In this document: positions 4,745-64,000 of the stretch, piece after piece
Layout of the letters: each line of letters begins with the position of its first letter
Numbering within the stretch: the first letter of the stretch is position 1
NCBI RefSeq assembly: GCF_002113885.1
Contig: NW_018407846.1
Coordinates: 81,492-145,491 of the forward strand
Source: Mizuhopecten yessoensis
Taxonomy: Eukaryota
Direction: 5' to 3'
Length of the DNA stretch: 64,000 nucleotides
Notes under the pieces: generated by a model
Told to the model about the DNA's origin: nothing
Database searches by the model: none
What the model saw: only the letters and a program-made list of their open reading frames with translations
Program-made: the position numbers and the translations under genes

Positions 4745-4870
4745 CCAGGCTAGGATACTGTCCGCTCCTGCCAGGCTAGGATACTGTCCACTCCTGCCAG
4801 GCTTGGATACCGTCTGCTCCTACCAGGCTAGGATGCTGTCCACTCCTGCCAGGCTAGGATACTGTCCACT
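4745..4870. repeat. 26-bp minisatellite (~5 copies)
   Basis: CCAGGCTAGGATACTGTCCACTCCTG units. Confidence 0.9.
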
Positions 4871-42700: not shown

Positions 42701-45700
42701 ACATTTGCCATAAATATATCACAATGATTTCATCAAGATTCATTAGTTTGGAGATATGTAATATCAAAGTGTTACTTTCTACACAAAAGTACGTTTATTA
42801 CGTACATTGTTTGTGAAGAAAGTAAAACTTTGATATTATATCACAATGCTACATTATTGCAACGATTTTTATTTTGTTAACAGAAAGTGACATCAACTTC
42901 CTGATGAACATTGCATTAGATAAGTTGGCGTTCCTTCCCTTCAGCTTCACGTTAGATAGTTGGAGGTGGGGTGTTTTCAGAGGAGACACTCTTCCACAGC
43001 ACTACAACTCTAAATGGTGGGAGTTACGGTAAGACATTGTAGGGACAACTGATGGATACAGGTATCTGAAACAGAGCCACATCTCTGAAACATTATAATT
43101 TAAGTTAAGTAGGTCCGTAAGCTTGTGACACTACTGTTTCGTTCGAATGTTTCCCTCCCTCCAATCCATTTTGGCGCCTTATCAAAATCAGCTCTCCAAC
43201 TGCTCTTGATTTTAAATATACAATATCACTATATTAAACGTGGACAATATATACTGTTATCAAGGGCTGTCCTGAAAGAAGCAATTTCTTTAAGGCATAG
43301 CCAGGTTTTTGGGGTTACATGTATACGGGATATGACCGATTCAAACATTGCGGTAAATGACGTAATCCCCTTTGGTGTAGTACCTTCTTTTAGGTTATAC
43401 GAGTTAACGTCAATAAGTCTAATTGGGGCATAGCTAAAATTACATTATATATGATAATTTAATATCATAGTTTAATGTCCAGCAAACGTTGCCGCTGATG
43501 CTTAGATCAAAGCTGGACCTATCAGCTCAATAGGGTTCAAATGATGACAAAAGCTCTAGAAAACACGACCGACAAGGTATGTCCCTGTCTGAATTCACTG
43601 TCTTGTACAGGAAATACTAATGAGCCCAGGGCAGTAATTGGTATTGGTAGCCTGATAAGATTGAAATCAGGCGTTTTTACGGGTTAATTGTATATATTCT
43701 TCAGGTGTAAATATCAGGGTGTTTCTCCACCTGTCGAAAGGACAGCGGAGGACTTTGACCCGGGATCTAAATATCATGTACCTTTCCAAGTATCTTATAT
43801 AAGGTAAGTCAAGTGGTGTGTAAATAATTACTTTGAATTAAAACAAGACAGCCACATATATTTTAAAAGTGTAGAACATTTCAAGATAAGGAAAAAAATG
43901 AAATACATTGAGAGAAAAAAGATATTGATGAATACTGGGGGAAAAAAACACAAACATGTTTTGAGAATTTGAGAGGTTAACAAACTACGTAAACATTTCA
44001 AATACTGCAATTTGATAGACCGTTGGTTGTTTCCCAGGTATTTCGTGGCATTCATACTGCAGTTCCAGTTCCAGAAATCTTTGTGCGATGTCGCTGGGCA
44101 CAAGGGTCCGCTTTATCTCTGTGATATATACAACTCAACTGCTGCAGGTGACAAACTCAGGTGTGTGTAGTAGCAAAATGTACTTATGACAATAAAGGAT
44201 GTATTGATGACAGGCTACAGAGTGTGCAGGTAACACATTATGTGCTTTTATCGGACGATCTCAAACCTCTATGACCAAATAATATTTGCGAGTGATATGT
44301 TTTAGGTGATAAACTCATGAGTGGGAAGATGAGAATCTATGTTATTTGTGGGTGAACAGGATGGGTTTATCTTTGTAGTCTTGTCAACCTTTTTTACGTT
44401 TTCATGCATGGAAATTATGCTCGAAAAACTGCAAAATCAGTGAAATTGAGCAAATGCTCAACTTTGATGAGATCACACAGTATGTTTACGAATAATTATT
44501 ACCTTGTACCTTTATAGAGAATTACTCAGTCTTGGGTCGTCCAAGTCATGGCCAGATGCCTTGGAAATCATGACAGGACAAAGAAATATGGACGCAAGAG
44601 CCTTTATTGAATACTTTCAACCTTTGACTGATTGGCTGAAAATCCAGAACAAAAATAAACGGTCGGGATGGACGGAGTTGTCGTGCCCTTCATCGACAAC
44701 AGGATTAATTGACAGTGAGGAAGCAGGATGGGAATGGATCGAGCAGAATGATAAATTGTTTACCGATATCTTCTCCGAAATGGCAAATGCTGAATGGCAG
44801 TATGCTACCAATATCACCGATCATAACAGAAAAATAAAGGCAGGTTATGTTAAAGATAACTGCTATTTAAAATAAAAAATCCATTTAAGTCCTTTCATCA
44901 TTCGTATTACATTCATTCCACCATAACGGCTGATATTGTAACGAAACATATTTGTATATCAAATAGTTTGTATAATCATATAAACGTTGCATGATTTGTA
45001 GGAGATCATTCAGCAATCCCAGATTGGAAAGTGCATTCGAAGGTTTATGCCCCTATTACAAATGTATACCGCGAGTGTGTCATATGTATTGACTTACGGC
45101 TAGGATTCAAATTCCACACAAAAAGTGCATTCAAGGAGCTTTCCGTAAATTGAAAAATGGACCGATTAAACGAGTCCAAAAACAGCTGTTTGTATTTTGT
45201 AGGTAGACACCACTTTGAAATTTGCAGAATATGAACAGGTAGCTGTTCAGAAAGCAAGTATGTTCGATTGGACAAGCTTTCAAAACAAGACCCTGCGAAG
45301 ACTGTTTAAAAAACTTAATACCACCATTGGTATTAACTCTCTTGAAGGCAAAGACAAACTTGAACAGGTAAGTAGACGAAACAATGATTTGCAGATCAAC
45401 ACATTTCTAATTATATTTTGTCCATGTGTTTAACACATATTTCGATGGAAGTTACAACGAAGACACCGTCGTTCCTAGAAGATTATCCAGGTACCTTCGT
45501 TCTCAATAAACAATCTTGACAATTTTGTTTTAAGTAGAAAAACCACTTTTGACTCTAGTAGTTAATCCATGCTCTGACATTCACAGGAAAAGGTGGTTGG
45601 ATTATGGAATGGTAGGTTGTATTGGATTATGGTTGTGTTGGTTTGCTATAAATGAGGTCCGGAATACGACTCTACTTCATTGTTGTTTATTCAAAAGGAT

Positions 45701-48700
45701 GAGTTCACATATGAGCTGACGTCATAAAAGACAATTGGATACAACGTCATAATACGCCGTTAATAAGGTGTCCGTAGTTTGGCGCCATTACTCTAACTAT
45801 TACATTTCTCGACATCCTCGGGGCCACAGAATGGTTTTAAATAATCCTTCAATATACAAGTTCAAATGTATATACACTTAACAATAACAATTTCCGACAT
45901 TCTCGGGGCCGCACAATGTTCATCATATTATGAATAGCAATGTATAGACATACATGTATAAATTAAGTTGCGATTAATTAATTGTTCTCGATATCCTTAT
46001 AATTGTCAATATGGTAAATAGTTGGAATATACACGATTATATATTCAATTCACACGCGTAAATCATTTTGTTTAACTTCCCGTTCATTTCTCAGTTTTTA
46101 GTTCGTGATCGTATTATAATTGTCACTTCGCGTTGTGTTTTTGTTTAAGTCTTTCGCTTCTCCGGATTCTGAGACCATCGACATTGTCACTAACTTCTGG
46201 GGGTACAGTTTAGTGATCGGTCTGTTTATCACTCCAATTTTTGTTCCTGATGACTGCTGCTCGGACTTGTCCATCTCGGCCTTCCATGAGTTCCTCCACG
46301 ACGGCGAGCTTCCAGCCTACCCGTTTAAAATCCCCGTGGACTTGCACAATATCTCCGACCGTTATTTTACAGTCATTATTTCCAGATATACGATGGAACT
46401 CTCTAAGCGACGTCAATTACTCAGTTTTCCATTGTATTCAAAAGTTGTTTAGGATGCGTGATTGTCTCTTTATGCGCTCATTAACCTTAACATGGTTGAT
46501 AACACTTGGCTCCATAGCGGTGTCGTCAGTGAACGGATAGGATAGGGACGTCAATCTTCGGCCGAATAGCAGTTTGGAAGGTGTAAGTGGTGCTGGGTTG
46601 TTTGGATTTGTTGATATGTAGGTCAAGGGGCGGTCATTCAGCATAGCTTTCGCTTCAGTGACGATGGTGTTTAGTGTCTCTATATCAACTCAAGATTTCC
46701 CTAATACTTTCTTAAGGGTAGTTTTTTTTAATCTAATTAGCCTTTCCCACCAACCCCCATACCACGGGGCACGGTAAGGGATGAATATCCACTCTACTCC
46801 ATGTCTCCCAATTTCTTCTCAAAGTTTATCCGCTTGGCATAGTTTTACAAACTCCTCAGCTGCCGCTTTATACGTCGAAGCGTTGTCGGATATTACAATG
46901 CTCGGCAATGATCGGCGACTGACGCAGCGTAAAAAGCTAACATGAATGAATTGAACGTAAGGTCATTCACAAGTTCCAGATGAATAGCCGTCGTAGACGC
47001 GCACGTGAACAGACATAAATATACTTTTCGGTCATTGTTGTCGTGATCTTTAACAGTAAGCGCTCCGGTAAAATCCACTCCAGTCACAGTGCTCCTGGGG
47101 CTGTTTTCCCAGTGTGGCCATTTTGAATCGTCTGTAAGCCAGTTGAGTCCTTTCCACCAAAGTGTATTATCCTTAAATTGAGCTGCGGAAATGCCACGCG
47201 TGAGAAGATCTGCTGAGTTGCTGTCAGTTAGGCAATATTTCCATGGAAAGTGTCCCGTTTTCTCCTTGATTTCCATCATGCGGTTAGCAACAAACTGCTT
47301 CAGTCGTTTACTTGATGAAATCCAGCTCAGGACGATCTGGCTGTCGCACCAGAATATAATGTCATTAACTTCAATGCTTTTTTTGTATGTGTGAAGCTAG
47401 AGGTGCTCCCCTAACTGCTTCATTAACTCAAGTGGCTGTTGTGTAATAGGACGAATGGATGCCACTCTGTTCCTCGCCATAAGAAGTGTCACTTGATCTG
47501 GTGTCTCTAAGTATGCGCATGTTCAATACGCTCGTTAGCTGGCATCTTTAAAGATGTGTAGTCGTAATTTTCCTTGTGTTGCTGACTGAAGGGCTCCAGG
47601 GATTTGGATTTTCACTATTTCCTTGATGACCCCCGAAAGATAGTTCCATTGCGTTTGAACATCAGTAGGTAGACTTTCATCCCACTCCTTTGTCTCCTTC
47701 CATAGCGTTTGCATGAGCATTTCCGCTCGCACAGTTACTGGACTCAGTAATCCCAAAGGACCGAAGATTTTCGAAGACTCTTGCAGTATGGCGCGCTTGG
47801 TAACCTCCGGGTGTGTATGCGTTCCGAATTTGTTTCCTTGATATTGCAATGTGTCTTCTTCGACGTTCTAAGATCTTCACCAATGTGCCGTTGTCAAGTG
47901 TTCCTTCCAATTTTGCACGATCCTGAAGTTTTCCGCTGTTTGAGTTCCAGGAATGTAAATTGAACCCTCCTTTGCTGAGGAGATCTCGCGATTCTTCGTA
48001 TAATTGTAGAACTGAACTTTCATTTTTGAAACTCATGAGGACAATGTCAACATACAAATCCTTCTCCAAGATCTCTGATACTTCGCTCGGGTTGTCCTTG
48101 AAGTGCTTTAAAAGCGTTGCGTTCAAGATGAAAGGCGAACAAGTTGCTCCGAATAATACTGCCTTGAAGCGGTAGGAGATGAGAGGACTCGTAGGGTCTG
48201 TAGGGTCACTCCACCAAAGAAAACGTGTAACATCACGATCATCTTCATCCAGTTCAATCTTTAAAAAAGCTTTCTCGATGTCTGATGAAACTGCGTATCT
48301 TTGTAGCCTGAACCTTATAAGTATTGCGGTTGAATCGTTCATTATCGGTGCATGAGACTCGAGACATTCGTTCAAACTGGTTCCTGTTTTTTTCTTTACA
48401 ACTACAGTCGAACACAATACGAATAGGTGTTGTTGACGAATCCTTGTGAACAGGATGGTGAGGGATGTATTGGATTTTCTTTCCGTCGTTTTCCGTGTCT
48501 GGAACTTTCTCTTTGAATCCACGCTGTTCTTGCTCCTCCATTATGTTGCTGTAATGTGTCAGTAAGTGCGGTTCTCGCTCCAACCGTCTGACTACACTTT
48601 CCGTCCTATGTTTGATAATCTCGTAGTTTGTTGGTAAGAAACCAGATTCCTGTTTCAACGGAAGTTTTGCCTAGTACTTTCCATCATTCAATGCTATTGA

Positions 48701-51700
48701 CGTTGCTCCGTACTCCTCAATCGTTCTGACTTGTTTCGGCGTTTGCTCGTCCTCACTCACACCTAGCGATTCAAGTTTCCAAAAAGTCTACACCCTCTGC
48801 ACTGTGGTTGATCAAAATGTTCATGATTGATGTATTCATAAATCCCATTGTTGAGGTCAACATTGTAGAAGCATTCGACGTATCGATTGGACCCAATAGC
48901 AAGTATCCGATTACCTGATCTTGCACTATGTCCCAATATTAGTTTGCTCCAATCAGAAGTGATATGTTGAACTTGTCATCGTTTGAGACTAGGTGCGCGA
49001 GCGGTAGATTTTTTTAGTACGGCAACAGTAACACTTTACTCCGGGCTCTGATCTCTATAGGTGTGGTGATCTTTGGTATAATTACAACCTCCATTGGAAT
49101 TCGGTCACCATTATAGGCTTCAACAGAAATGCGCGCGGTCTTCAAATGACGTGCATGTTGTTCATTGCCTCCGAAGGCAGCTATCCTAATGGAAATGGTT
49201 CCTACGCACTCATTCTCTAACTTCTCGGCTATGTCTTCAGTTATAAACGAATTTTGCGCACCTTTGTCGAGAAGAATGTTAGCCAAAGTGTTCTGATCAT
49301 CTGACCATACTGGCGCTACTGCGGTTTTTAGTAGGACATCTGAGTGTGTGGTGATGGATGTAGAATGAAGCGCTGAAGTTTTCCCTAGTTTCTCCTCTTT
49401 CTCGTTACTCCTTACGGAATTTGTAAATTTAGTACTGGATGGCTGAGGTCGCTGTTGTTCTCTACTGGTATGGTGTTTTTTCCCGCATTTCCTGCACTTG
49501 AACTTGTAACGGCAATCAACTACTTTGTGTGACCCGAAACAGTTAAAACACATGTTCTTTGCCATTACATTATCAACGCGCACTATATAATCTGTGACAT
49601 TTGTGCATTCATTTGGCGAATGTGAATCCTGGCAAAACAAGACTTTCGGTTCTCGGTGTTTGTGGAATGTAAGGCTTGACCCTTACCTTTAGGTGGTTTG
49701 TTATCGAAAGTTCCCGTTACAAATGATGCCGTTGGTACTACTTCCGGTTCCGTTTGTCCGGACTCCAAAATGCAAACCTCCTTTCTGATTGCTTCACGCA
49801 AGGATTGTAAATCCCAGTTATCGTTTCCGTGGTCTCTCGTAATGTTCCGTTTTAAATCGGGCGTTAGTTTATTTTTGATAATCGGAACGGGAAGTGATCC
49901 AAATGATGACTCACATTGTCCTAACGAATTTAATCCGCGAATGTAGGACTCCATTTTATCATAGGTAGCAGAATACAGTAGAAATGGCCCGACTCTGATA
50001 AACAAGGCACATGTCGAGGAAATGTAAACACAGCGGATTTACCCTACACAACACATGTATACATGTATATATATTTGTAAACTGCATTACATTTACAATA
50101 CATNAACCCAAAATTTGACCCCCGCAACTAGTAATTTTTTTCCTAAGCTCTGTCTGAAATTAAAGATTACCTACCTGGTTGCAGAATTATCTGGGTCCCA
50201 GTAAAATTGTAAAACTTCAAAATTTTACCTCCTGTAAAGCTAGCTTTTCATGTGTACGCACCCTTTCGTATTATGGCCAAAATTTTATTCTCGAACCAAA
50301 GAAATCTTCTTTCTTTTTTACAAATGTGAAGCTCACATAGCCCACTTTATCATGCTTATACCAATTTTAGTACAGTTTTATGTTTATAATTGTTTTACAT
50401 ATTATTATACAGGGGTTAGCCATTTAACAAAAATATCACCCATGGCCACAACCCTCTACTGTACACTGCTACCATAGAATGATATGAGGCCACTAGCGTT
50501 GGATCGCGGGACTGGGATGTTGATAAGATTTTCCATGTACGCGTTTTTGACTTGATGTGGTTGTCCAAAGCGTTGTATGAGGATATCAATGGCTTGCACA
50601 CAGTTATCAATGGTGAGGGGTAAACCTTAAATACACTGTGATGCTTGACCATGTAGCTGGACTTTGATGTAATTAAACTTCTGAATTTCCGTCAAACTAG
50701 CGTTGAAATGAATGGTAGATTGAAACGAATCCCAAAATGTCCGCCATTGCAAAATGTCCCCACTAAATGTTAGAAGGTTCATCTTGGGAAGTTTGTTGAA
50801 CTCGATGACAGCTGATGGCCAACGGGATTGAAACTGGAATCTGACTGATTCGCATTCACTCTGTCTACTCTGGGGGTACAATTCTGGACGTGTGGGGTGA
50901 AATTCTGGGCGTGGGCGTTCAACACAGATTGGGTTGTTTGATGAGGGTGTGAAAAAAATACTTCGTGTTCACCAATGGATGCCTTGATTTCGGACAGTTT
51001 GTATTCTAAATCGAACAAATACTCATCTGTATCGACGATCTCGTCTTCTATGTTCTCCTCCTTAATTTGTAGAATGATCTTCTCGTTGAGTTGTTGAATA
51101 ACTTCCTTCTTGTCCGACAGTGATCCCAAGACTGTGCGGACAGCTGTTAGGTTCTTTGATGAAGTGAAGTCCTCTAGTTTTGTCAGTAATCGAGTAATAG
51201 TGCTCTTGTTTCCGGCTCTCACTTGTCTTAGTTTGGACAGCTCCATATTCCCTTTTGTTACGGCACCAATGTATTGGTTTATGGTTGTGTTGGTTTGCTA
51301 TAAATGAGGTCCGGAATACGACTCTACTTCATTGTTGTTTATTCAAAAAGATGAGCTCACATATAGATGACGTCATAAAAGACAATTTGATACAACGTCA
51401 TAATACGCCGTTAATAAGGTGTCCATAGTTTGGCGCCATTACTCTAGCTATTACATTTCTCGACATAGGTTTACCAGGACAATTATGTATAAAAAGGGTC
51501 AATCTGTACTCTAAAACTTAACTGACTGCTGGTACAACCTGACTGCTGGCATGCGATTACATGTACCTTACTTTATATTTCAATTTCTATGTATTCACAA
51601 CACTTAATGTGACGTGTGATAACGTGTTGTCGAATTAAGTGACATAATCAACCCCATACTGAAATAATATCTTTCGTATTAATGACCGATATTTAGCACA

Positions 51701-54700
51701 CATTCTGAGATTTCAGTTGAAATTCAGAAAAAAAGTGAATACCGACGTGTATAAACCAAACCGTTATTCGAACTCAAAATCGATGATATAATGATGAAAT
51801 ATAAACAAAATAAAGGTTTACATTGATACGCTTGAACAAAATACAGGAATGGTATGTACAGGTAATCCAGGAGGGTAAGCGTCTTCAGTTCCATCGACCT
51901 TATTCGTTAGTCAAATCTAAGCCAAATCCACGTAATGACGCTTTCTCAAAGGCGGGTGAGTGAAACCACTATACGGTAAGGCGTCATAATGAGCATCAAT
52001 ATAAATGTCGACATTCACGTAGTTCAAGGAAATATAATTTTTTCCCAACGAGATCATGTTTTCAACCATAGAACGTCTCCATAGTCTCCGTCGATGTGAA
52101 TCTCAAACTCAAGCGTTGTAAGGTTACCCGTCTTCACAGAAATTGCGATAATGTAAATTAGGTTGTTGTAAGAAGCAGCGTTGTAACTATAAAGAAAGGA
52201 TAAAGTCCTAATACAAAGCTCGAAATCATACTGCTTAGGAGTAAGCCACCCCTGTTAGTCATGATATGAGTAAAGCTCGAGGTAAACGGCTAATATAGGA
52301 GAGTCTGTCGTGTTGTTTATTTTAAGTTCAGTGGCTACGTGCGGTCGACTTGGGAAATAATGTTCTCCTTTTATAAAGATGACACAACATCGATATATTT
52401 GACAGTAAAAATTAGTTGTTTTAATATATTTGTAATCTGTTAGCATAAGTGTTTCCATTAAGTCCCCCATGAGAACGAAAACTCGCCAATTTACCGAAAT
52501 ATCTTATCATAAGATGTGAAATAATCCCAACCATAAAACGTTTTATATGCCTGTCATGTCATGTTTGTAGCATACAATGGTTGGTTCCTGTTCTCTGACT
52601 GTTGTCATTTTATTGTCGCGAGTGTAAGCAGGGGTTTGATAAATATAAGCACAATGACCTGTGCAATATATGCACATATGTCTGTCTATGATTGTGTATA
52701 TATATGCTGAAATAAATGTATTTGTACATGTACTTGTATGTGTGTGTAAGTGTGTATGAGGTGTGTGAGATGTTTCCTTCGGGAGTTACTCCCCCATAGC
52801 CTTGTGTTAATATGAATTATTTTGTGTTATTTTTTTCATTTGCAACATGTCTAAAATATTATGTCTCCTTGTTTATTCCACTTTGGCCATTTGACGGAGA
52901 GAATTTATAAAGGATTTGCCTGTTATTCAATCCAATTGACTACGACATCTTGTCAATAAAATTTGATGAAATGAAATGAAATAAGTACAATGTTGATTAT
53001 AGTGAAATTGTGATGTAAATCACACTGTGCAATCTACCTGTACTGTCAGTTTTTGTTCAGCAAATTGTATTATAAAGAAGGCTTGTGAAATAGCGATGAC
53101 GATATGCAAAGAATATATATGTTTTGTCACTAGGTAGGAGATGATGGTAATAGAGGAGGTGGAAGAGCCGTATTGACGTTTTTATTATTATATTTTAGCA
53201 CAATTCAATAATCTCCGAAATGAAGGCTATCACCAGTAAGGCCAACGTGTGTCTGTCAGATGGACAGTGTCATCAGATCATGCCAGGTAAGTGTTAAAGT
53301 AAGGCTTAATTTGTGTAGTGCCACAGCGAGGCCAAGGTGTATACTGTTTGAATTATAAATCAGGAGGGATCATTCCCCTGGTTTAAGGTTCAATTATAGC
53401 GCTAGAAGCTCTAATTCACACCTTTCATGTAACAAATATTGTCTTGTTAAACTGGCATGAGAATAACCAGTTCATGTTACGGGTTATGTTTGGTGATGTA
53501 TTTTTTCTAGATTTCTCGCCTAACTTATGCTGTTCTATCAATTTCTCATGATGAATAGGTCTCACTCAGGTCTTTTCCGAGTCCCGTAACTACAGCCTGC
53601 TGACTGAAGCCTGGAGAAAATGGCGGGATGCGACTGGGCGGAAAATGAAGGATCTGTACAAAGATATGGTTAACATTAGCAATGAGGCCTTCATGCAACT
53701 AGGTACGACATACTGTTTTTCTTAAAAACTTCTTAGATGGTATGTCAATCGTTCTTTCTATAAGTTTTGTTTTTAAATTTGAGATATATCAATATTCAAA
53801 TAATAAATGCATATGAAATGCTGAATATAAAACAGAATTGATTACTTGTATGCTATTTGTATGTGAACAGAATGTAAGTTATATTGTAGATTTGATTAAA
53901 AACACATTTTATTTTATATTTTAAACTAAGGATATGAAGACACTGGAGATTACTGGAGATCCTGGTATGAATCGCCAACATTACAGGAAAATTTAGAACA
54001 ACTGTTAATGCAGTTAGAGCCGCTATATAAAAATCTTCATGCTTATATTCGACGGAAATTACGGAACTTCTACGGAGAAGAACATTTCCCTGCCTCCGGC
54101 CATGTTCCTGCACATTTATTTGGTAAGTCAGAAAAAATGTTTTTAAAATATTTTAACTAGTTAGTGTCGTCGATAGAGCTATTTCACTTTCAGTGCATTT
54201 CTCTCAAACTTTATGCAGGTATCAATTATGCATTAGATGTGTTTGTGTTTCAGAGTCCAACGTTTAAATTCACTGTTGCACTACTAAAATTGTCAAACAA
54301 TGACATCTATTGTACATGGCATTAGGGTATAAATGTCTAACATGTTACATGTTGTAGGTTCTATGAGATTTGGAAGAAACCACACTCTGTGTATTTTGTA
54401 ACAATACCTACAACGAGTTCTGTATGGTCGAGATATATTTTATGATTATAACCCGTAAATATGCACAACTTAACTTGTATTTATAATAAGAAAGTACGTG
54501 CAAAACATTGTTTTGTCTTAACTAATGATCCATCCGACCATTTACTCTACCACACATTTATCGACAGTGTTATTATGTTGATTGACATTTGGTGATTTAC
54601 CTTTAAATGTATAAAGGAAACATGTGGGGACAACAGTGGAATAACATATACGACCTTGTGGAACCTTTCAAGGGCAAATCCAGTATGGACGTTACTTCTA

Positions 54701-57700
54701 GGTTACAAAAAATTGTGAGTAACAGTTGACTGTTATCATACACACTGACATGAATATGTACAATTTAACTATCTTTATCTATATAAATCAAGTAGGTGAT
54801 ACTATTCAATCTTGGTGCATTATAGGAAAGTTAATTTTAGAACAGAAATGATTGTGGCATTTTAAATTAAAAAAAAAATACGTGACAAGTGGATACATGA
54901 CATTAATTGATGGGTTATTTTTCTGATTTATGCCTAAAAAAAATCTGATTTATGCCTATGTTTTTTTATGTATGCCTATGTTTTTTTTCTGATTTATGCC
55001 TATGATTTTCAGGGACTTAAGCCGTTGAACCTGTTCAAGGTTGCGGAGGAATTCTTCACCTCACTAGGTCTTCTAGAAATGCCACAATCATTTTGGGAAG
55101 ACTCTATGATCGTTAAGCCTGAGGATCGCGATGTCATGTGCCACGCGTCTGCCTGGGATTTCCATAATGGCAAAGATTTCAGGTAACACAAAAACGACCC
55201 GGTGTATCGATTACCAATATTTTAATACAGTTATCATATCTCTTCTCCCTATCGAGGAAGACTTAATGTAAAATAAATAAAAATAAATATATGATATTCA
55301 ACGGAAAACCATTAAATAATCTGTGTGTATTTCATTTTGCAGCGTATTTCCCTATTAAACACTAGCAAAACTCTCGTATGTTAGCTATGATTGTAAACCA
55401 TCTGTCCACATTGATGATGTCATTATGATTGTTCGTAATCGTAGATATTCTGCAAACCACAGTCCAATCGTAGAATTTGTACACTGTAAATGTTATTAGA
55501 CGTAAAGGCGTACTTTTAATGTATATATTTAACTTTGTTTATATTTAGCATTCATAATCAATAATCTACAGCGCGTTCAATACTTATAACAATTGGTAGA
55601 ACATATGCTTTCACTTTCATAGTCATTTAGCTCAACGAATTTGAATGATCACACAAAATGATAATATCCGTGTATGTCAGAATATTTCATTAATAGACGG
55701 TAAATCGGGACTCTTTCGCCCATCTTACCGGTAAAGTCTATATCACCCCTGTGTTTATAAAATAAAAGCGTAACGCTAATTAAGATTAACTATGCATTAA
55801 AACTAAAAAGTAAAATAAAAGGCATTGTTTTATGTAGAATTAAGATGTGTACAAAAGTTGACATGGAGGATTTGATGACTATCCACCACGAGATGGGACA
55901 CATTCAGTACTTCCTACAGTACAAGGACCTCCCGATATCCTTCAGGAACGGAGCAAACAATGGTTTTCATGAAGCTGTCGGAGATGTCATGGAACTTTCC
56001 GTCTCAACACCAGAACATCTACGCAAAATCGGTTTCCTTGACAACGTTGTACATGATTCAGGTCTGTATCGTTGTAAAGGCATTATTTTAAGATTTAAAT
56101 ATTAAAATAGTTTGAACTGGGACTCTAGATCTCAAAACAAAGACAGTAACCACAACCAAAATGAATAAACTTGTGTACAGTTAACGCTTATTATAACAGG
56201 AAAAGTTAAATATAAGCAGTCAGTCATTCATAAATGTATTGTGGACCTTTGCAATCTGCATATGCATAACTTAAAAAACGATATCCTGATTGTTCAAGCC
56301 CACATGATAGTTATCACTTTATGGACGTTTTCTGTTGGTGTTTAGTATTTGGTATGATAGTTATCACTTTATGGAGGTTTTCTGTTGGTGTTTAGTATTT
56401 GGTATGATAGTTACACTTTATTGAAGTGTTCTGTTGGTGTTTAGTATTTGGTATGATAGTTATCACTTTATGGAGGTTTTCTGTTGGTGTTTAGTATTTG
56501 GTATGATAGTTATCACTTTATGGAAGTGTTCTGTTGGTGTTTAGTATTTGGTATTATAGGTATCACTTTATGGAAGTTTTCTGTTGGTGTTTAGTATTTG
56601 GTATGATAGTTATCACTTTATTGAAGTGTTCTGTTGGTGTTAAGTATTTGGTATGATAGTTATCACCTTGTGGAAGTTTTCTTTTGGTGTTTAGTATTTG
56701 GTATGATAGTTATCACTTTATTGAAGTTTTCTGTTGGTGTTTAGTATTTGGTATGATAGTTATCACTTTATTGAAGTGTTCTGTTGGTGTTTAGTATTTG
56801 GTATGATAGTTATCACCTTATGGAAGTTTTCTTTTGGTGTTTAGTATTTGGTATGATAGTAATCACTTTATGGAAGTTTTCTGTTGGTGTTTAGTATTTG
56901 GTATGATAGTTTTCACCTTATGGAAGTTTTCTGTTGGTGTTTAGTATTTGGTATGATTTTCTTGTTGCTGTTAATAAACAAAAAATATTTCAATTCTTAT
57001 TGTGTGCTTGTAAATTGCGATTGTTTTCAGATAGCGATATCAACTTCCTAATGTCCATGGCCTTGAAAAAGATAGCGTTCCTTCCATTCGGATATATGAT
57101 CGACCAATGGCGTTGGAGTGTTTTTAGTGGAGAGACAACTCCAGAAGAATACAACGAAAAATGGTGGCAGCTAAGGTGAGTAAAATCTATATGCCGTTAA
57201 GATAATGAGATTCCGCTTACCGACTTATTTCCTACAATGAATCGAAAGCGGCGACTTATGTGGGGCCCATTTAAATCGGGTTTTCTTTGTTTCTTCCACT
57301 AGAAAGATACGCAGAAGAGACAACAATCGATTGCTTTACGCATTGCAGAATTTGGAATCTGTTATTGTACTTTCCTTCCTACCTACTCTTTCTAAACGTA
57401 ACACTCCAAAAATACATGTAACAGACACTGTAGTTCTTGCTTGCATTAACGTAGCTGCTACGTTTATCTAGAGCGTCGAATAATGATCACGGAAGTTTGA
57501 AAATGTCTCGCATCAGCAATGGTAGTTGTGGAGTGTCTTGTTCTTAATCAATTATTATTTATACTCATGTATCGTCTTTGCCTTTGCAACAGCGTAAGGT
57601 CATAGTGGTAAGGTCAATGTGTGGTGCTAAACATAACACCCGGAACACATGTTAATATGTATATTAACATCGATATGCAGTAACAAGCAACTATTTTATA

Positions 57701-60700
57701 TAATAGGTGTAAATTACAAGGGATGTCGCCTCCAATCGCTAGGACTTCAGATGACTTTGACGCAGGGGCCAAGTACCACGTCGCGTCCAACACTGCCTAC
57801 ATCAGGTGAAAGGTGTATTTGTTATGTGATTAGAATGTTATCTATTGAACGCTTTGTCCAAACATCAACAATTAGGAAATGGGAGGGGTGGGGCAGTTAA
57901 GTCAAAATATGTTGGAAGTTCTTTAAATAACTACTTACTGTTGTATAGTGGGCCCTATTCAAATGAAGGGGACCTCATGTTCAAATATCAACAATTAGGA
58001 AATGGGAGGGTGGGGCAGTTAAAGTCGAAAATATATTGGAAGTTCTTTAAATAATTACTTACTGTTGTATATTGGGCCCTATTCAAATGAAGAGGACCTT
58101 CTCTCTACCTCTTAATATTGTTACCGTTTCTGTATGTTGAGATGGGAGGATAACAAAACATTCATGTGACTTAAACGTTTAAAATAAACGTTGCAACAGT
58201 CTTTTTGGCCTACAACATGTATTGATGGGACTTAAATGGTCTGTTTTAGGTACTTTATTAGTTTTGTGATACAGTTTCAATTCCATAAGGCCTTATGTAC
58301 TGCCGCGGGGAAAACAGGTCCTTTACACCGATGTGACATCTACCAGTCAAGAGAAGCAGGTAAACTCTTAGGGTAAGTGAAATAGTATATACTTCAATAT
58401 GCTGGAACACAAAAATACTTCACCTTAAAAACAGGCAAATATACACTTCCTTATACTTTTGATCATCAATTAGATTAGTTAATGTAGGATAACTTAAATC
58501 ATCCGACGGGAAATTGTAATAGCTGAAATAGGCCACTGTGGGCCATTTGTATATGTCCATTATAAGGCAGTTTCACCACGAGTGACTTAGTGATATTAAT
58601 AATAATGTAGTAGTCATATAATTTTCGCAAAAGATCTAACAATTTCCAGAACTCGTTCAAATTATTGTATTGCACGAACAATAAAATATAGCAAATAGGA
58701 CGAAAATTATTTCTTGTAATTGTAATGGTTCAAGAGATCTAACTATGTTATTGTTGAGTTATTGACAGTATGGTTAATAAAGGACGAGTCATGATATATA
58801 TTTGATATATCATTGACAACATGTGATACTGATTAGATATCTCATTGACAACATGTCGTTTTTATTAGATACATCGTTGACAACAAGTCGTATTTATTTG
58901 ATATATCATTGACAACAAGTCGTATTTATTTGAGATATCATTGACAACAAGTCGAACTGATTATGTATATCCTTGAAAACAAATCGTACTGATTAGATAT
59001 CTCATCGACAACATGTCGTATTTATTTGATATATCATTGACAACATGTGGTACTAATTAGATATATCATTGACAACATGTGGTACTAATTAGATATATCA
59101 TTGACAACATGTGGTACAAATTAGATATATCATTGACAACATGTCGTTTTTATTAGATATATCATTGACAACAAGTCGTACTGATTATATATATCATTGA
59201 CAACATGTCGTACTGATTCGATATCTAATTGACAACATGTCATACTGATTAGCTATACCATTGACAAAATGTCGTATTTATTAGATATCCCATTGGCAAC
59301 ATGTCGAATTTTTTAGATATCCCATTGGAAACATGTCGTATTTATTAGATAAAATCAATGACAACAAGTCTTACATATAGGATATCTCATTGACAACATC
59401 TCGTTTTTGTAAGATATACCATTGACAACATGTCGTTTTTTTTTAATATATCATTGACAACATGTGGTACTGATAATATATCTCATCGACAACATGTCGT
59501 ATTTATTTGATATATCATTGACAACAAGTCAAACTGATTATGTATATCATTGACAACAATTCGTACTGATTAGATATCTCATCGACAACATGTCGTATTT
59601 ATTTGATATATAATTGACAACAAGTCGTACTGATTATATATCTCATTTACAACATGTACTGATTAGCTATACCGTTGCCAACATGTACTGATTCGATATC
59701 TAATGACAACAAGTCAAACTGATTATATATCTCATTGACAACAAGTCGTACTGATTATATATATATTTGACAACATGTCGTACTATTTCGATATCTAATT
59801 GACAACAAGTCGTACTGATTATATATCTCATTGACAACATGTCGTTTTAATTATATACATCATTGACAACATGTCGTACTGATTTGCTATACAATTGACA
59901 AAATGTCGTATTTATTACATATCTCATTGGCAACATGTCGTATTTATTATATATGTCATCGACAACATGTCGTATTTATTACATATCTCATTGGCAACAT
60001 GTCGTATTTATTATATATCTCATTGACAACATCTCGTATTTATTAGATATATCATTGACAATATGTGGTACTATTAATGTCTCATCGACAACATGACTTA
60101 CTGAATACATATTTCATTGACAGCATTTTTCATTGATAGCATATCTTACTGGCAACATATTTGACAATTTATCATATGTACAATATATTTGATGGACGAT
60201 ATGAATAGCTGATTACATTGGCGTTACGCAATGTCTCTGAATAACATTATATGTATTGACAGCATATCTGATTGAGGTAATTTCAGATTGACAACATGAC
60301 TCGCTGATACATATTAAATCAAAACTGTTGTGTTATTTTTTTCGGATATACAGAGATATGTTGGCAATGGGTTCATCGCAACCTTGGCAGGAGGCCATGG
60401 AAAAGATTACAGGTCAGCGAGAAATGAATGCTGAACCACTGATGGAATATTTCAAGCCGCTTACTGATTGGTTGAGAGAACAGAATCAGAACGATACGAT
60501 TGGCTGGACTGACGAGTGTCCTCAGGACGAACCAGAGCTAATCAACGATGCTGAGTTAGCCAAAGAATTCCTTTTGAATTATGACAATGAGGTACAAGAA
60601 ATGGACGCATTCTATATGTCTGCCTACTGGAATTACGTCACAAATATCACTGATTACAACCAGCAAAAACAGGTAGGTATTTACAAAGTTCATAGAACTC

Positions 60701-63700
60701 ATCTGACTACATGCGGCCTTTATCAAGACATTTGTTCCATTCCCTTTTTGTTTCATTCAGTGATATTATGCCAATCAACAAGTTAGGGAAGTTACTTTCA
60801 TACACTTCATATTTATAAGATTTTCTACAGCAACGAAATATCAGTATGCTCATTGGGCAAGAAGTACAATTTTACCCTAATGTAAAATGTTTAAATAAAC
60901 GCCAGCTTTAACTGTTGACAGGAGTCAAATGAGCTATGACGATTAAAAGCTTTGAAAAATTATTTTCCTCAGTTTAAAAATGTCTTTATTCAACAACCAT
61001 ATAGTTGTATATATTGTTTAGGCCTGAAAAGACAAAAAATATTACGACTCCATAATTTCCCTGGGGTCCTGCCTATACTTTGACGACACTTAGTCCAATG
61101 TCATAACTAGGAAACGGCGTTACCAGTTTGGTTTTGCAGAACATGCAGAAAATTGGACATGGTTAAGGGGGCGTTACATGGGAAGAATATATATCCGCTA
61201 CATATAGCCATATAAATAAATAAACGTGTCTTAGTGATATTTCTTCATCGTTGATCCTTAGGATTTGACATTTGCGTTAAAGCACATGTGCCACAAAGAT
61301 GGCAGTTTTAGCGTTTAAGTCAGTTCCTTGAAAGTTCGTCAAACTTAAATATTTTTTTCTAGAAAGAATAACTGGACAAAGATAATTAAACCCTAACTGG
61401 AATAGAGATCTTGAAAGCCGGATCCAAAAATACTGACAAAATATTATCATTGAACGTATTATTGCATATTTTCTCCATATTACTTAAGTACATAGGGGAG
61501 TGACACAGGCCCTCTCAGCTACCTTTTAATTGATAATTAAAGCAAGTTTATATCAGATTTATTTTTTGTTTTTAATAGGTTGAGGCAAACCTTATAGCAT
61601 CAGATTTCAGTAGAAATGCTGCTCTCAATGGTTCCTTGTTCAACTGGAAAACTTTACCCGACCCGCTGATGAGGAAACAGTTTGCCAGTTTAGTTGACAA
61701 AGGTACCTCCTTAAAAGACAAAGAGAAGACCAAGGAGGTACATAAGCTTGGTTATGCAGATATTTATTTTAACCTAAATATTATATTTTCATATAAGTTA
61801 TAATGAGGTTACTGTATGAACACACTGCAGTTTCTAAATGCTGCACAATGAGATTCCTATATGATATATATCACTACATGTATATGATAAATTTAATTTA
61901 ATTATCTAATAATATTCATATAAGATTTCTATATGATCTTTGAATCATTTAAGCTACACCGTATACAATATAATGTTATCTCTAGGATAATTTTACTTGA
62001 ACAAAACAAATATTAATAAATGATGGTTAAAGTATAATGCCTCTTCTCTAGGTAATAACAGGAGTAATACCATACGATGTCGATATGCTATGCAATACGA
62101 TTTCCGGATGATATATAATAATACTATATATGTATTACACAATAACATTTCGATGTGACAAAAATTATAAATTATATATATTAGACAGTTCCATTTTCTA
62201 TATGCTATACAATGCAATTATTTCTTATACAATAATGCAACAAACTGTTTTATGCCAAACTGAGCAAAAGCAAAATGCTATTTGGACAATATTGTCATTT
62301 CTCTTACTATCGGGACATGGTATAAATTACAATTGTTGAAGTGTCAGTATGATTTAAATTCTTTGTTATTTACTCCCTATTTAGACAGAGCTTACAGCTG
62401 TTCAGAGTGGCGGAATTGGATTTAAATGAAATCTTGTAGACTGTTACACAATTATATATATTTCTACACCAGAAATTAGATTGTTATAGATGATTTAGCT
62501 GATGGACTGTTGGTGGGCGAATTCCCCTATATGCATCTCGAAGCCATGTTCATTGCGACAGGATTGATGTTGCTATATGAATGTGAATTTTTGCTTAACA
62601 ACATTTTACAGCTCTGCTTCTAAACTGAATGAATCTATTTATAATGATTATGATAATAAACACTTAATGGATTTATGATTAACTCAGCGCAGCAACGTGA
62701 TGGCAAAACTCAAATCCATTTACGCCAAAGCCAAAGCTTGCCTTACAAAGGACAGATGTCTGAAAATGGAGCCAGGTAAGATATGATGATCTTCAGTTAG
62801 GCTTTTGTTTGTTGATTTTCAAATTAGTTAGTTTTAGTAAAGTACCGATCTCTACCGCTTTTTAAAGATATCTCTTGCAAGTTAAATTATCCTGCAATGT
62901 TATAACACAGAACGTAACTTTGTTTACCACCTGATATGAGTAGATAATGTGTTACTTCCAGCAATCAATTATGCTTGTCCATCGTGAAATCTTATATGTT
63001 ACCTATATATGTGTAGCGCTTGCGAGCAGAAATGTTGGTAATGGCTGTCGATGGAAGCCACATAATAACCAGTACTGCATATATGAATCGATGATTGACT
63101 TGCTAATACTTTGGCTACTCTGATGGTACCGTCTAGTTGATCTCGTGTTTGGTACAGTAAGTATGTAACAAAAGTGGAGTGATGAAAAGTGAAAACCAGC
63201 ACCACTAACCTTCAACTTATGTCTTCCACTTATCGAGGGTGCTCGAACGGCACTGTGTGGTATGTTTTATATTTATGCGATTAGTATTGTTGCTTACATT
63301 TTTTCAAGATAACTATCAATACATGTATTACAAAAATGCTTTCATGTCTGTATTTTTGTATTTATCATTTAATTTATATAGTCTGAAAGGCCTTTGTTAA
63401 TAAATATTTAGCTTTATATTGCACTGAAAAAGTTTGATTCAAAGTGGGTTTTCACTTATTTCTTAGACTTGAATGTGCTGATGGCAACGTCAAGAGATCA
63501 GGAAGAGCTTTTACAGGGCTGGAAGTCATGGAGAAATGCTACAGGGCCCAAAATGAAAAACCATTATGCTAGATTTGTGGAGCTAAGTAATGAGGGAGCG
63601 AAGGAAAATGGTAAATTTATAAAGTTATACTGAAGGAACTTTAGGCACATCATATATGTTAATCTTCACTTCGTTCTGGAAACATGAAATTTGATAGGGA

Positions 63701-64000
63701 ATTTTTTTTTTTATTTACAATGGAAGTACAGAATTGGTTATGAAAAATACATAAAATTTTATACCTATTTGATGATTGCTATATTTCAAACAAATATGAC
63801 ATTACTACTCCATTTTGCTAGGTTACAACGATGTCGGTGAGTACTGGCGTTCCTGGTATGATACGCCCAGTCTCCGTGACGACCTGGTCATATTGTTAGA
63901 CCGGCTACAGGTGTTATATCTGCAACTTCATACATACGTCAAGGGCAAACTGGTGACGTATTATGGAAAAGAGCATTTCCCGCGGTCAGGCCATATTCCT
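18476..64000 (+). CDS. ACE: Multi-domain (>=3 peptidase M2 domains) angiotensin-converting enzyme-like zinc metallopeptidase gene; 28 coding exons in window, 3' end beyond window
   Basis: Exons splice in phase into one 1445-codon frame: signal peptide, HHEMGH + FHEAIGD (domain 1), HHEMGH + FHEAVGD (domain 2), ACE motifs WxYx[39 protein letters not shown]; third domain begins in exon 60354-60672. Confidence 0.95.
19150..19915. repeat. Degenerate ~25-bp tandem array related to the 45-bp minisatellite
   Basis: Recurring CAGGTGTAACGTATAATTCGTACGTA-like units. Confidence 0.7.
19916..20575 (+). mobile_element. Crypton-derived (DUF3504/ZMYM-KCTD1-type tyrosine recombinase) non-autonomous element
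   Basis: Remnant [31 protein letters not shown]...[21 protein letters not shown] resembles the Crypton YR N-terminus; 6-bp terminal direct repeat TATTAT; ~60-bp-arm 3' hairpin 20427-20566; 5' end is inverted copy of 20407-20422. Confidence 0.78.
20575..24990. repeat. 45-bp minisatellite, ~98 copies
   Basis: Unit TACGTGCAATGTGTATTTYGTACGTACYGGTGTAACTTACTATTA; near-identical core, more diverged ends. Confidence 0.98.
25530..26380 (-). mobile_element. HINE/Helentron-like non-autonomous element with internal tandem subunits
   Basis: Minus strand starts TTTTTTTAGCTCATCTGGTC; repeated AAATTGAGTCCCTTTGCCCAAG...AAATTTGG subunits about every 160-180 bp; distal boundary approximate. Confidence 0.65.
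27948..29680. repeat. 36-bp minisatellite (~48 copies)
   Basis: GATGTTACTTATGACACGTATTATCTATATATTGKA units. Confidence 0.96.
29996..30285. mobile_element. Foldback/MITE-like inverted repeat element
   Basis: Inner arms 30092-30153 / 30197-30260; outer IR CCTTCACGTGATTAT / ATAATCACGCGGAGG. Confidence 0.7.
30990..31145 (+). mobile_element. SINE fragment
   Basis: B-box-like GGTTCGATTCCC followed by degenerate SINE core. Confidence 0.45.
31379..31540 (+). CDS. ACE: ACE-like exon 2
   Basis: tttcag| [54 protein letters not shown] |gttaca. Confidence 0.88.
31574..32003. mobile_element. TIR non-autonomous DNA transposon (CAGG.GCGGAT termini, hAT-like)
   Basis: CAGGCGCGGATTTAGG ... CCTGGATCCGCCCCTG inverted ends; TSD not clear. 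Confidence 0.7.
32247..32478. repeat. 38-bp minisatellite (6 copies), followed by ~3 degenerate ~50-bp units to 32610
   Basis: TGTCACGCAGACCTAACATAACTGGACTGGGTACCACA units. Confidence 0.92.
32837..32927 (+). CDS. ACE: ACE-like exon 3
   Basis: tttcag| [30 protein letters not shown] |gtaaga. Confidence 0.92.
33221..33367 (+). CDS. ACE: ACE-like exon 4
   Basis: ttacag| [49 protein letters not shown] |gtaagg. Confidence 0.92.
33516..33688 (+). mobile_element. tRNA-derived SINE, degenerate, related to 14679-14858
   Basis: GATGGCTTAGTGG head, TTTTCTCCGGGTACTCCGGTTT...CCACCACAAAAACCTG core. Confidence 0.72.
34692..34883 (+). CDS. ACE: ACE-like exon 5
   Basis: 192 nt; DFDNYAEYW...[12 protein letters not shown]...GHIPAHLLG |gtacgt. 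Confidence 0.93.
35572..35736. mobile_element. Long hairpin, probable 3' terminus of a non-autonomous Crypton-type element
   Basis: ~70-bp inverted arms around CCTCGGCAGAGCCTCGGG loop, ending in TATTA. Confidence 0.6.
35860..35957 (+). CDS. ACE: ACE-like exon 6
   Basis: 98 nt; [33 protein letters not shown] |gtaact. Confidence 0.93.
36470..36639 (+). CDS. ACE: ACE-like exon 7
   Basis: 170 nt; [20 protein letters not shown]...[24 protein letters not shown]...DYR |gtgaga. Confidence 0.93.
37180..37304 (+). CDS. ACE: ACE-like exon 8 (domain 1 HEMGH zinc motif)
   Basis: 125 nt; [41 protein letters not shown] |gtatac. Confidence 0.94.
37905..38197. mobile_element. Palindromic MITE/foldback element
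   Basis: Arms TATTCCGTCTTTG.GTATTGCAGAGTTATCTTCTCTTGTG.GCAGGTATTGATTGT and its reverse complement, centre ~38055. Confidence 0.8.
38788..39050 (-). mobile_element. tRNA-SINE 3' portion, minus strand
   Basis: (GGTTT)n tail then TTTAACGTCCTATCAACAGCTA...TTTAAGGA, the reverse complement of the tail of SINE 14679-14858. Confidence 0.72.
39575..39673 (+). CDS. ACE: ACE-like exon 9 (domain 1 third zinc ligand)
   Basis: 99 nt; ttgtag| [33 protein letters not shown] |gtgagg. Confidence 0.93.
40990..41615. repeat. 27-bp minisatellite (~23 copies)
   Basis: CAATCCTACATAA(T/G)GCAACATTACACA units. Confidence 0.95.
41750..42780 (-). mobile_element. Decayed LINE 3' fragment (L1/Tx1-like, zf-RVT region)
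   Basis: Broken minus frames read KWENI...[24 protein letters not shown], similar to the post-RT zf-RVT motif; boundaries approximate. Confidence 0.5.
42884..43028 (+). CDS. ACE: ACE-like exon 10
   Basis: 145 nt; [32 protein letters not shown]...YNSKWWELR |gtaaga. Confidence 0.93.
43705..43803 (+). CDS. ACE: ACE-like exon 11
   Basis: 99 nt; [33 protein letters not shown] |gtaagt. Confidence 0.93.
44038..44160 (+). CDS. ACE: ACE-like exon 12
   Basis: 123 nt; [41 protein letters not shown] |gtgtgt. Confidence 0.93.
44518..44839 (+). CDS. ACE: ACE-like exon 13 (end of domain 1, linker, start of domain 2)
   Basis: [16 protein letters not shown]...YFQPLTDWL...GWTELSCP...[17 protein letters not shown]; donor AAG|gcaggt (GC) or 4 nt later GCAG|gttatg. 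Confidence 0.9.
45203..45367 (+). CDS. ACE: ACE-like exon 14
   Basis: ttgtag| [55 protein letters not shown] |gtaagt (alternative start 45207). Confidence 0.88.
45618..45814 (-). repeat. 3' LTR of BEL/Pao element (197 bp)
   Basis: Direct repeat of 51270-51465; preceded on the minus strand by PPT-like GGCCCCGAGGA. Confidence 0.95.
49964..50473. mobile_element. Non-autonomous TIR DNA transposon (MITE, 3-bp TSD, possibly PIF/Harbinger-like) nested in BEL gag
   Basis: 19-bp TIRs GGTAGCAGAATACAGTAGA / TCTACTGTACACTGCTACC (2 mismatches), ATA duplicated on both sides; removal restores gag codons ...[13 protein letters not shown]. Confidence 0.9.
51257..51268 (-). promoter_or_regulatory. Primer-binding site, tRNA-His type
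   Basis: Minus strand TGGTGCCGTAAC one base after the 5' LTR; near-match to the complement of the tRNA-His 3' end (TGGTGCCGTGAC). Confidence 0.8.
51270..51465 (-). repeat. 5' LTR of BEL/Pao element (196 bp)
   Basis: Direct repeat of 45618-45814; followed on the minus strand by PBS and gag ATG at 51246. Confidence 0.95.
51860..52500 (-). mobile_element. Decayed Penelope-like retroelement RT fragment
   Basis: Broken minus frames KYIDVV...[20 protein letters not shown], resembling the RYIDDV...ELEIKETTDS..SASYLDL motif; tail GACGCTTACCCTCCTGG. Confidence 0.6.
53199..53286 (+). CDS. ACE: ACE-like exon 15
   Basis: 88 nt; [29 protein letters not shown] |gtaagt. Confidence 0.88.
53559..53702 (+). 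CDS. ACE: ACE-like exon 16
   Basis: 144 nt; [48 protein letters not shown] |gtacga. Confidence 0.9.
53931..54122 (+). CDS. ACE: ACE-like exon 17
   Basis: 192 nt; [14 protein letters not shown]...[15 protein letters not shown]...GHVPAHLF |gtaagt. Confidence 0.93.
54617..54714 (+). CDS. ACE: ACE-like exon 18
   Basis: 98 nt; [33 protein letters not shown] |gtgagt. Confidence 0.92.
55013..55182 (+). CDS. ACE: ACE-like exon 19
   Basis: 170 nt; [20 protein letters not shown]...[17 protein letters not shown] |gtaaca. Confidence 0.93.
55838..56061 (+). CDS. ACE: ACE-like exon 20 (domain 2 HEMGH and EAVGD zinc motifs)
   Basis: 224 nt; [28 protein letters not shown]...[28 protein letters not shown] |gtctgt. 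Confidence 0.95.
56304..56957. repeat. 50-bp minisatellite (~13 copies)
   Basis: ATGATAGTTATCACTTTATGGAAGTTTTCTGTTGGTGTTTAGTATTTGGT units. Confidence 0.96.
57031..57175 (+). CDS. ACE: ACE-like exon 21
   Basis: 145 nt; [32 protein letters not shown]...YNEKWWQLR |gtgagt. Confidence 0.94.
57707..57805 (+). CDS. ACE: ACE-like exon 22
   Basis: 99 nt; [33 protein letters not shown] |gtgaaa. Confidence 0.93.
57858..58099. repeat. ~122-bp tandem duplication (2 copies)
   Basis: CAAA.ATCAACAATTAGGAAATGGGAGGG...GGGCCCTATTCAAATGAAG.GGACCT repeated. Confidence 0.9.
58250..58372 (+). CDS. ACE: ACE-like exon 23
   Basis: 123 nt; [41 protein letters not shown] |gtaagt. Confidence 0.93.
58800..60120. repeat. 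32-bp minisatellite (~40 copies)
   Basis: ATATCATTGACAACATGTCGTACTGATTAGAT units; degenerate to ~60300. Confidence 0.95.
60354..60672 (+). CDS. ACE: ACE-like exon 24 (end of domain 2, linker, start of domain 3)
   Basis: 319 nt; [14 protein letters not shown]...YFKPLTDWL...[24 protein letters not shown]...[17 protein letters not shown] |gtaggt. Confidence 0.93.
61579..61737 (+). CDS. ACE: ACE-like exon 25 (domain 3)
   Basis: 159 nt; [53 protein letters not shown] |gtacat. Confidence 0.87.
62688..62775 (+). CDS. ACE: ACE-like exon 26 (domain 3)
   Basis: 88 nt; [29 protein letters not shown] |gtaaga. Confidence 0.9.
63467..63610 (+). CDS. ACE: ACE-like exon 27 (domain 3)
   Basis: 144 nt; [48 protein letters not shown] |gtaaat. 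Confidence 0.92.
63822..64000 (+). CDS. ACE: ACE-like exon 28 (domain 3), truncated by window edge
   Basis: tgctag| [22 protein letters not shown]...[13 protein letters not shown]...HFPRSGHIP. Confidence 0.92.

Follow-up and report, generated by a model that had tools for sequence, protein, structure and literature searches.

How many peptidase domains can a single ACE chain hold? Vertebrate somatic ACE has two and invertebrate ACEs typically have one, AnoACE9 of Anopheles gambiae being a two-domain exception (PMC7642307); Ciona and Branchiostoma also have two-domain ACEs (PMC1325048, PMC3354321). Two-domain ACEs arose several times and their advantage is unexplained (PMC1325048, PMC3354321), and why one somatic ACE chain has two active sites, in place of separate single-domain enzymes, is an open question (PMC1325048). 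All described lophotrochozoan ACEs have a single catalytic region (PMC3235092). A sequence-only reading of a locus in the scallop Mizuhopecten yessoensis had proposed at least three tandem M2 domains in one polypeptide, and perhaps more. Its premise that characterised ACEs have one or two domains stands, in that our literature search found none described with three or more, but two-domain ACEs are not confined to vertebrates. We followed up this proposal in the 64,000-nt stretch of contig NW_018407846.1 in which the locus lies, hereafter the window.

Using a motif scan and per-exon translation, we traced an ACE-like gene on the plus strand from 18476 to 64000, with 28 exons comprising 4335 nt and 1445 open codons (Table 1). 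The gene had been placed at 44518-64000; the end, at the window edge, is retained, and the start moves to the ATG at 18476. The window contains the signal peptide, the complete M2 domains D1 and D2, and the first 40% of D3. Every one of the 28 exons is open in the phase passed on by the preceding exon, all acceptors are AG, all donors are GT save a GC after exon 13, and the N positions (16294, 16699, 31970 and 50104) all fall outside exons. A local M2 profile run against six frames of the window matched these 28 exons, in profile order, and found no match upstream of exon 1; an extra domain upstream of D1 was rejected on this basis. Exons were translated and searched singly, and full-length comparisons used the database proteins P0172 and P0280 together with proteins of relatives. 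Most exons tested passed the PF01401 gathering cut-off singly, with the short, variable exons 14 and 25 below it. Faint Dark_WHD matches in Pfam, which had no passing stretch and lay inside M2 domains, were disregarded.

Table 1. Features of the ACE-like gene, in window positions
Feature	Position	Strand	Remark
Exon 1, ATG, hydrophobic signal-peptide-like leader, D1 start	18476..18700	+	N-terminus same in Ylistrum and Pecten orthologues
Exon 2 (D1)	31379..31540	+	
Exon 3 (D1)	32837..32927	+	
Exon 4 (D1)	33221..33367	+	
Exon 5 (D1)	34692..34883	+	
Exon 6 (D1; Gln281 equivalent)	35860..35957	+	
Exon 7 (D1; His353 equivalent)	36470..36639	+	
Exon 8 (D1; HEMGH zinc motif)	37180..37304	+	
Exon 9 (D1; third zinc ligand, HEAIG)	39575..39673	+	
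Exon 10 (D1)	42884..43028	+	
Exon 11 (D1; Lys511, His513, Tyr520 equivalents)	43705..43803	+	
Exon 12 (D1; Tyr523 equivalent)	44038..44160	+	
Exon 13 (D1/D2 junction; linker ~14 residues; GC donor)	44518..44839	+	
Exon 14 (D2)	45203..45367	+	
Bel/Pao-type LTR retroelement, decayed, within intron 14, no protein part	45618..51466	-	
Exon 15 (D2)	53199..53286	+	
Exon 16 (D2)	53559..53702	+	
Exon 17 (D2)	53931..54122	+	
Exon 18 (D2)	54617..54714	+	
Exon 19 (D2; His353 equivalent)	55013..55182	+	
Exon 20 (D2; HEMGH and HEAVG in single exon)	55838..56061	+	
Exon 21 (D2)	57031..57175	+	
Exon 22 (D2)	57707..57805	+	
Exon 23 (D2)	58250..58372	+	Its end is the loose 5' end of RNA contigs
Exon 24 (D2/D3 junction; linker ~13 residues)	60354..60672	+	RNA contigs
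Exon 25 (D3)	61579..61737	+	RNA contigs
Exon 26 (D3)	62688..62775	+	RNA contigs
Exon 27 (D3)	63467..63610	+	RNA contigs
Exon 28 (D3), truncated by window end	63822..64000	+	Gene runs on: rest of D3, D4, D5, hydrophobic tail

The intron that separates the HEMGH exon from the third-ligand exon (37305-39574 in D1) is also present in Ylistrum D1, D3, D4 and D5 and missing in D2 (55838-56061), which indicates a loss in D2 and not a D1-specific gain. Seven long tandem arrays were found, at 20560-24987, 27948-29680, 41000-41615, 56304-56957, 58800-60126, 4867-5860 and 6967-8457 (units of 45, 36, 27, 50, 32, 28 and 26 bp, respectively); five of them lie in the gene's introns. The 5.8-kb retroelement of intron 14 has 198-bp terminal repeats that are 96% identical and broken ORFs matching RVT_1, DUF1758, DUF1759 and aspartic protease.

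The claim of a multi-domain chain depends on the junctions. Exon 24 (319 nt; AG/GT; from phase 2 to phase 0) has no stop. One Peptidase_M2 domain ends in it (profile 529-581) and the next begins, and its alignment to the N/C-domain junction of human somatic ACE (PDB 9CLX 573-680) is unbroken. Exon 13 has the same pattern of two stretches, a PF01401 end and then a start, and requires the GC donor. Both the D1/D2 and the D2/D3 junctions therefore sit within a single exon, with no stop, stalk or membrane helix, as had been asserted for exon 24. The exon 13 donor (44839-44845) is GC here and GT at the equivalent place in Ylistrum; the nearest GT is 4 nt further on, and its use would shift the frame.

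The four exons that follow exon 24 (159, 88, 144 and at least 179 nt) are open and in phase, in agreement with the sequence-only reading, and their joints were confirmed in RNA-type contigs from three studies, which carry GT..AG joints at 60672-61579, 61737-62688, 62775-63467 and 63610-63822. All four joints are in X3 and X6 contigs, and in an X4 contig as well, there with the third intron on a short side. X3 is RNA on record and X4 and X6 are RNA by guess; such contigs show joints, not single molecules, strand or level. As the joints lead from the end of exon 23 through exon 24 and into exons 25-28, D2 is spliced into D3. Of the 8015 nt of the X3 contig, 6902 nt lie past position 64000, where the five-domain model needs 4644 coding nt. 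Corresponding exons of the domain copies are 24-64% identical as protein, with 43, 41 and 54% for exons 5/17/28, previously judged about half identical by eye, and whole domains are mutually 39-54% identical. Comparison of the gene's introns with one another gave no match at E<1e-5. The divergence of domains and introns, the RNA splicing and the conserved domain order uphold the earlier view that this is neither a recent duplication nor an assembly stutter.

Database models are the source for D4, D5 and the tail, which the window does not reach, and the downstream exon structure was read from the Ylistrum locus. Two models, P0172 (2265 aa) and P0280 (3320 aa), match the window exons at 96-100%, and both are on one 564-kb contig. 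P0172 begins in D2, after the retroelement, and P0280 begins in D1, skipping several exons; both run on through complete D3, D4 and D5, and P0172 then ends in a hydrophobic tail. Adding the rest of P0172 to the window codons yields a protein of ~2990 aa with five domains. The nearest other proteins are those of the scallops Ylistrum balloti and Pecten maximus. The Ylistrum orthologue has 2991 aa, five domains and a GPI-type tail, is collinear with the scallop gene (61-96% match per exon), and has 4/4 junctions inside single exons; PF01401 gave five stretches in it and four in P0172. The 28 in-phase exons, the RNA joints, the database models and this orthologue thus bear out the proposal of at least three tandem domains, and counting downstream to the hydrophobic tail in the models turns "perhaps more" into five.

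Linkers between domains of the scallop protein are 9-14 residues long, and P0172 has 20 sequons. Its terminal hydrophobic stretch ends 5 residues before the C-terminus; in 12 mollusc proteins this distance is 0-5 residues, compared to 23-33 in vertebrate ACE. By hydropathy and by eye, the pattern resembles that of GPI-anchored proteins, which have a signal peptide, a small residue at the omega site and a hydrophobic stretch at the very end but no cytoplasmic tail, and the tail is most likely a GPI-anchor signal. A sixth domain, seen in P0280 and in the Pecten model, was read as probably an annotation fusion with an adjacent inactive ACE gene, because in Pecten a full hydrophobic tail precedes it; the length of the X3 contig fits either version. 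Immediately downstream of the scallop gene there seems to be a gene for a single-domain, inactive ACE that ends in a hydrophobic tail of its own, and P0280 (2800-3320) and P0308 (3067-3680) carry it as a fusion.

To ask which domains could be catalytic, we used human testis ACE numbering, taken from an aligned primate C-domain. D1-D3 retain Q281, H353, H383, E384, H387, E411, K511, H513, Y520, R522 and Y523. The HExxH motif with its downstream Glu ligand is found in D1 and D2 in the window and in D3 and D5 in the database model, and not in D4. The roles of Q281, K511, Y520 and R522 are described in PMC7642307; the first three bind the substrate C-terminus in S2' and place substrates for dipeptide release, and ACE2 is without these three (PMC7642307). 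The presence of Q281, K511 and Y520 in D1-D3 and their absence from ACE2 lead us to predict that D1-D3 are dipeptidyl carboxypeptidases of ACE type, not of ACE2 type. At pocket positions, D1/D2/D3 have Y/M/Q at 379 and Q/F/Y at 391, and D2 has K at 453. These differences are common to the scallops, which suggests different substrate preferences for the three domains.

In D4, the two zinc histidines are missing from each of the three scallops that have full models (3/3), and Q281 and K511 are gone too. The predicted structure of this domain has a pLDDT of 89.5 and a TM of 0.91-0.95 to human ACE domains (the alpha-helical clam-shell fold), D4 is 63-65% identical between scallop genera, and we predict it to be a folded pseudo-enzyme. 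D5 keeps HExxH and E411 here, and H353, K511, H513, Y520 and Y523 are gone; in Ylistrum it is without E384 and in Pecten without both histidines, so that it is probably inactive. R522 of the second chloride site is found in 5/5 domains. The multi-active-site peptidase proposed earlier thus appears to be one in D1-D3, with intact catalytic residues, and not in D4 and D5. A predicted D2-D3 structure (pLDDT 90, pTM 0.59) is consistent with independent domains, although lack of signal could also yield a low pTM. Each domain probably works by the usual ACE chemistry. We note that a cysteine at testis-ACE position 490 and one just past the terminal GW occur together in 106 domains, neither occurs in 24, and the two are discordant in 8; this pair (window exons 11, 13, 22 and 24) may be a lophotrochozoan disulfide pinning the linker, a pattern confounded by kinship.

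A search of mollusc proteomes for three or more M2 repeats, as the sequence-only reading had suggested, started from the junction exon, a three-domain hit in Lymnaea and P0280. It recovered ACE models with 3-7 domains in more than 20 species of bivalves and gastropods, all automatic annotations. Examples that share a signal peptide, tandem M2 domains, GW..CP linkers and a hydrophobic tail are Ylistrum XP_060075065 (the one-to-one orthologue), Pecten XP_033759589, Mytilus XP_071156754, Ostrea XP_055997290, Haliotis XP_067685542, Mercenaria XP_053409042 and Littorina XP_070175022. Three-domain models occur in Mercenaria, Dreissena, Mactra, Potamilus, Sinanodonta, Solemya, Biomphalaria, Physella, Lymnaea, Nucella and Argopecten (the last probably truncated); four-domain models in Pomacea, Littorina and Babylonia, each with a dead first domain, and in a Haliotis paralogue; five-domain models in Mytilus and Haliotis species, Gigantopelta and scallops. 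Crassostrea isoforms have five and six domains, Ostrea isoforms six and seven, and one Haliotis model seven. Dead domains are D4/D5 in scallops and D1 in the three caenogastropods, with none in mussel, oyster or abalone. A complete three-domain clam ACE is encoded by an intron-free contig of 6071 nt. The oyster RefSeq isoforms (Crassostrea gigas, six or five domains, P0310 and P0165; Ostrea edulis, seven or six, P0335 and P0309) are one whole domain apart, which reflects either alternative splicing of a complete domain or mis-mapping between recently copied domains.

Domain trees were built with FastTree and as a quick IQ-TREE run, the latter without the long-branch dead domains. Domains cluster by position across species: D2 of scallop, mussel and oyster group together (SH-aLRT 97), as do the last domains of bivalves and gastropods (83-91, a moderate value from a quick tree in which deep branches are weak). 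Oyster D3-D5 appear in the trees as recent internal copies, and the mollusc M2 domains form a group of their own, apart from vertebrate N and C domains (SH-aLRT 97). The position-wise grouping makes the array at least as old as pteriomorph bivalves. Judged from these trees, it predates the scallop/mussel/oyster split and probably also the bivalve-gastropod split. The location of all four Ylistrum junctions within single exons suggests that each duplication joined the last exon of one copy with the first exon of the next.

Separate models with 3-5 domains occur in fireflies and other beetles, Daphnia, Culicoides, a mite, Trichuris and Trichinella, where annotation fusion is possible. In the firefly models (P0183, P0186 and P0187), which represent an independent expansion, four ACE domains keep their zinc motifs and the tail is of the transmembrane kind. 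The ACE-like worm models P0013, P0319 and P0313 have three domains in Trichuris (zinc motifs degenerate in T. trichiura) and five in Trichinella, the latter annotation-fused to a carboxylase gene. A Tamandua model of 1918 aa with three ACE domains (P0312) is probably a read-through of ACE into ACE3.

We favor, with moderate confidence, the reading that the scallop gene encodes an intact, membrane-anchored ACE array with active D1-D3 and inactive D4/D5 that trims peptides at an epithelium. The chain would enter the secretory pathway, become glycosylated and be GPI-anchored by a hydrophobic tail with no cytoplasmic part, and its five M2 domains, on short linkers, would probably fold independently like beads on a string. 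Each domain would take small peptides into its own zinc site, and D1-D3 would act as zinc dipeptidyl carboxypeptidases, removing C-terminal dipeptides from small extracellular peptides. As D1-D3 differ at pocket residues kept among scallops, one anchored chain may hold several specificities, and several specificities plus more sites per anchored molecule would most simply be the benefit. The three active domains would be distal, carried on the two inactive ones; given their membrane-proximal position, D4/D5 are most simply a stalk, a peptide-binding module or an interaction module. Tandem duplications would have built the array by fusing one copy's last exon to the next copy's first exon, each dropping the anchor signal and signal peptide that lay between copies, and copy number would still be changing. 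Most likely the protein would trim a broad range of peptides at the surface of an epithelium (gut, palp, gill). This role is a guess of moderate weight, because it is borrowed from the single-domain oyster CgACE, a different and mainly testicular protein (PMC3235092).

Four other readings were weighed against this one. That adjacent single-domain ACE genes or an assembly duplication were taken for one gene has almost no probability left. Annotation fusions do occur, as in the sixth domain of P0280 and the Pecten model, which follows or replaces a complete hydrophobic tail, and in Tamandua, but here the junctions are inside single exons without a stop or signal peptide, RNA splicing in three studies refutes such an artefact for D2/D3, the domains and introns are too diverged, and domain order is conserved across species. 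It is very improbable that D1 is uncoupled in this species, with the GC donor or the retroelement splitting the gene and leaving a D1-D5 chain rare or absent. The donor differs from the GT of Ylistrum, an LTR element occupies intron 14 and P0172 begins past it; against this, P0280 spans the D1/D2 junction in frame, no stop interrupts D1 or exons 13-14, which share 76-83% identity with the D1 of Ylistrum and Pecten, and D2 has no signal peptide of its own. A polyprotein, in which the long chain is a precursor cleaved at its linkers into soluble single-domain ACEs and an anchored remnant, seems improbable too, if less so. Such cleavage would suit domains that are predicted to fold independently, with no confidence in their relative orientation, and in Crassostrea gigas and Ostrea edulis (P0310, P0309) the D2/D3 linker includes a basic run, RKR, that could be a convertase site. 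RKR is missing in Saccostrea, however, the short scallop linkers have no basic cluster past the terminal GW motif, the D2/D3 junction corresponds to that between the N and C domains of somatic ACE, which stays uncleaved, and two dead, folded, membrane-proximal domains would better suit an intact chain.

The fourth reading concerns function and is unlikely, though it weighs more than the preceding three: a specialised role in peptide hormone or neuropeptide processing, in gametes or in adhesion, with the dead domains being ligand-binding or adhesive and not a stalk. Oyster CgACE is required for fertilisation (PMC3235092), and nematode ACN-1, according to a passage citing it in PMC1325048, functions without an active site. 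D4 has stayed open and folded across three scallop genera, the dead domain of caenogastropods is the distal one and so cannot be a stalk, and one RNA-seq run of the species (X24) without reads is compatible with restricted expression, while being no test of it. On the other side, D4 and D5 evolve faster than D1-D3, the D5 lesions differ per scallop as under relaxed selection, and oysters, mussels and abalones have 5-7 intact zinc motifs, which fits a benefit from dosage or breadth. Beyond the epithelial array that we favor, a broader proposal is possible but tentative: an old mollusc family of giant GPI-anchored ACEs with 3-7 domains and up to 4200 aa, acting as intact multi-specificity platforms, with dead domains co-opted for ligand binding or regulation and domain number tuned by whole-domain alternative splicing.

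Our literature search, which covered mainly journals outside subscription, found no account of ACEs with three or more domains. Within that coverage the novelty claimed earlier holds for published description, and it is lowered by the models already in many bivalve and gastropod annotations. Since such models exist across both groups, a five-domain ACE is not unique to this genome. The arrangement is apparently old, widespread and undescribed, its sequences public for years and many of them named 'uncharacterized protein'; the novelty is in architecture and biology, with no new enzyme class. These proteins correct the published view of lophotrochozoan ACEs as single-domain (PMC3235092). A natural series of 3, 4, 5, 6 and 7 domains, intact and dead at varied positions, makes the tandem-domain question testable among its options of cooperativity, substrate division, reach from the membrane and dosage. 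ACE-inhibitor experiments in bivalves and ACE gene counts may contain a large unrecognised target.

Surface hydrolases made of tandem catalytic repeats include lactase-phlorizin hydrolase and maltase-glucoamylase, and carboxypeptidase D has three tandem domains, the third inactive. These offer a functional analogy only, as their folds are unrelated to that of the scallop ACE. Within family M2, CgACE (a single domain of 613 aa, ~75 kDa, expressed in digestive tract, gill and foremost testis) and leech TtACE are likewise lophotrochozoan dipeptidyl carboxypeptidases of ACE type, but single-domain (PMC3235092); C. gigas itself also has 5-6-domain models (XP_034299426, UniProt K1R5X4). AnoACE9 and the Ciona and Branchiostoma ACEs likewise represent independent M2 tandem duplication in invertebrates; they have two domains, closest to each other, whereas in the mollusc arrays, of 3-7 domains, orthology follows domain position across families. 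The nearest working parallel is vertebrate somatic ACE (peptidyl-dipeptidase A, EC 3.4.15.1; PDB 7Q3Y, 9CLX), which also has tandem M2 domains in one chain, a junction alignable in one piece, and HExxH...E with Q281/K511/Y520 in common with scallop D1-D3, each 46-52% identical to a primate ACE domain. The scallop protein has five domains, two of them degenerate, in contrast to N and C, a linker ~10 residues shorter, and a GPI-type tail in place of the transmembrane helix and cytoplasmic tail. It is thus an M2 member of independent origin that is predicted to work like somatic ACE and is not its orthologue.
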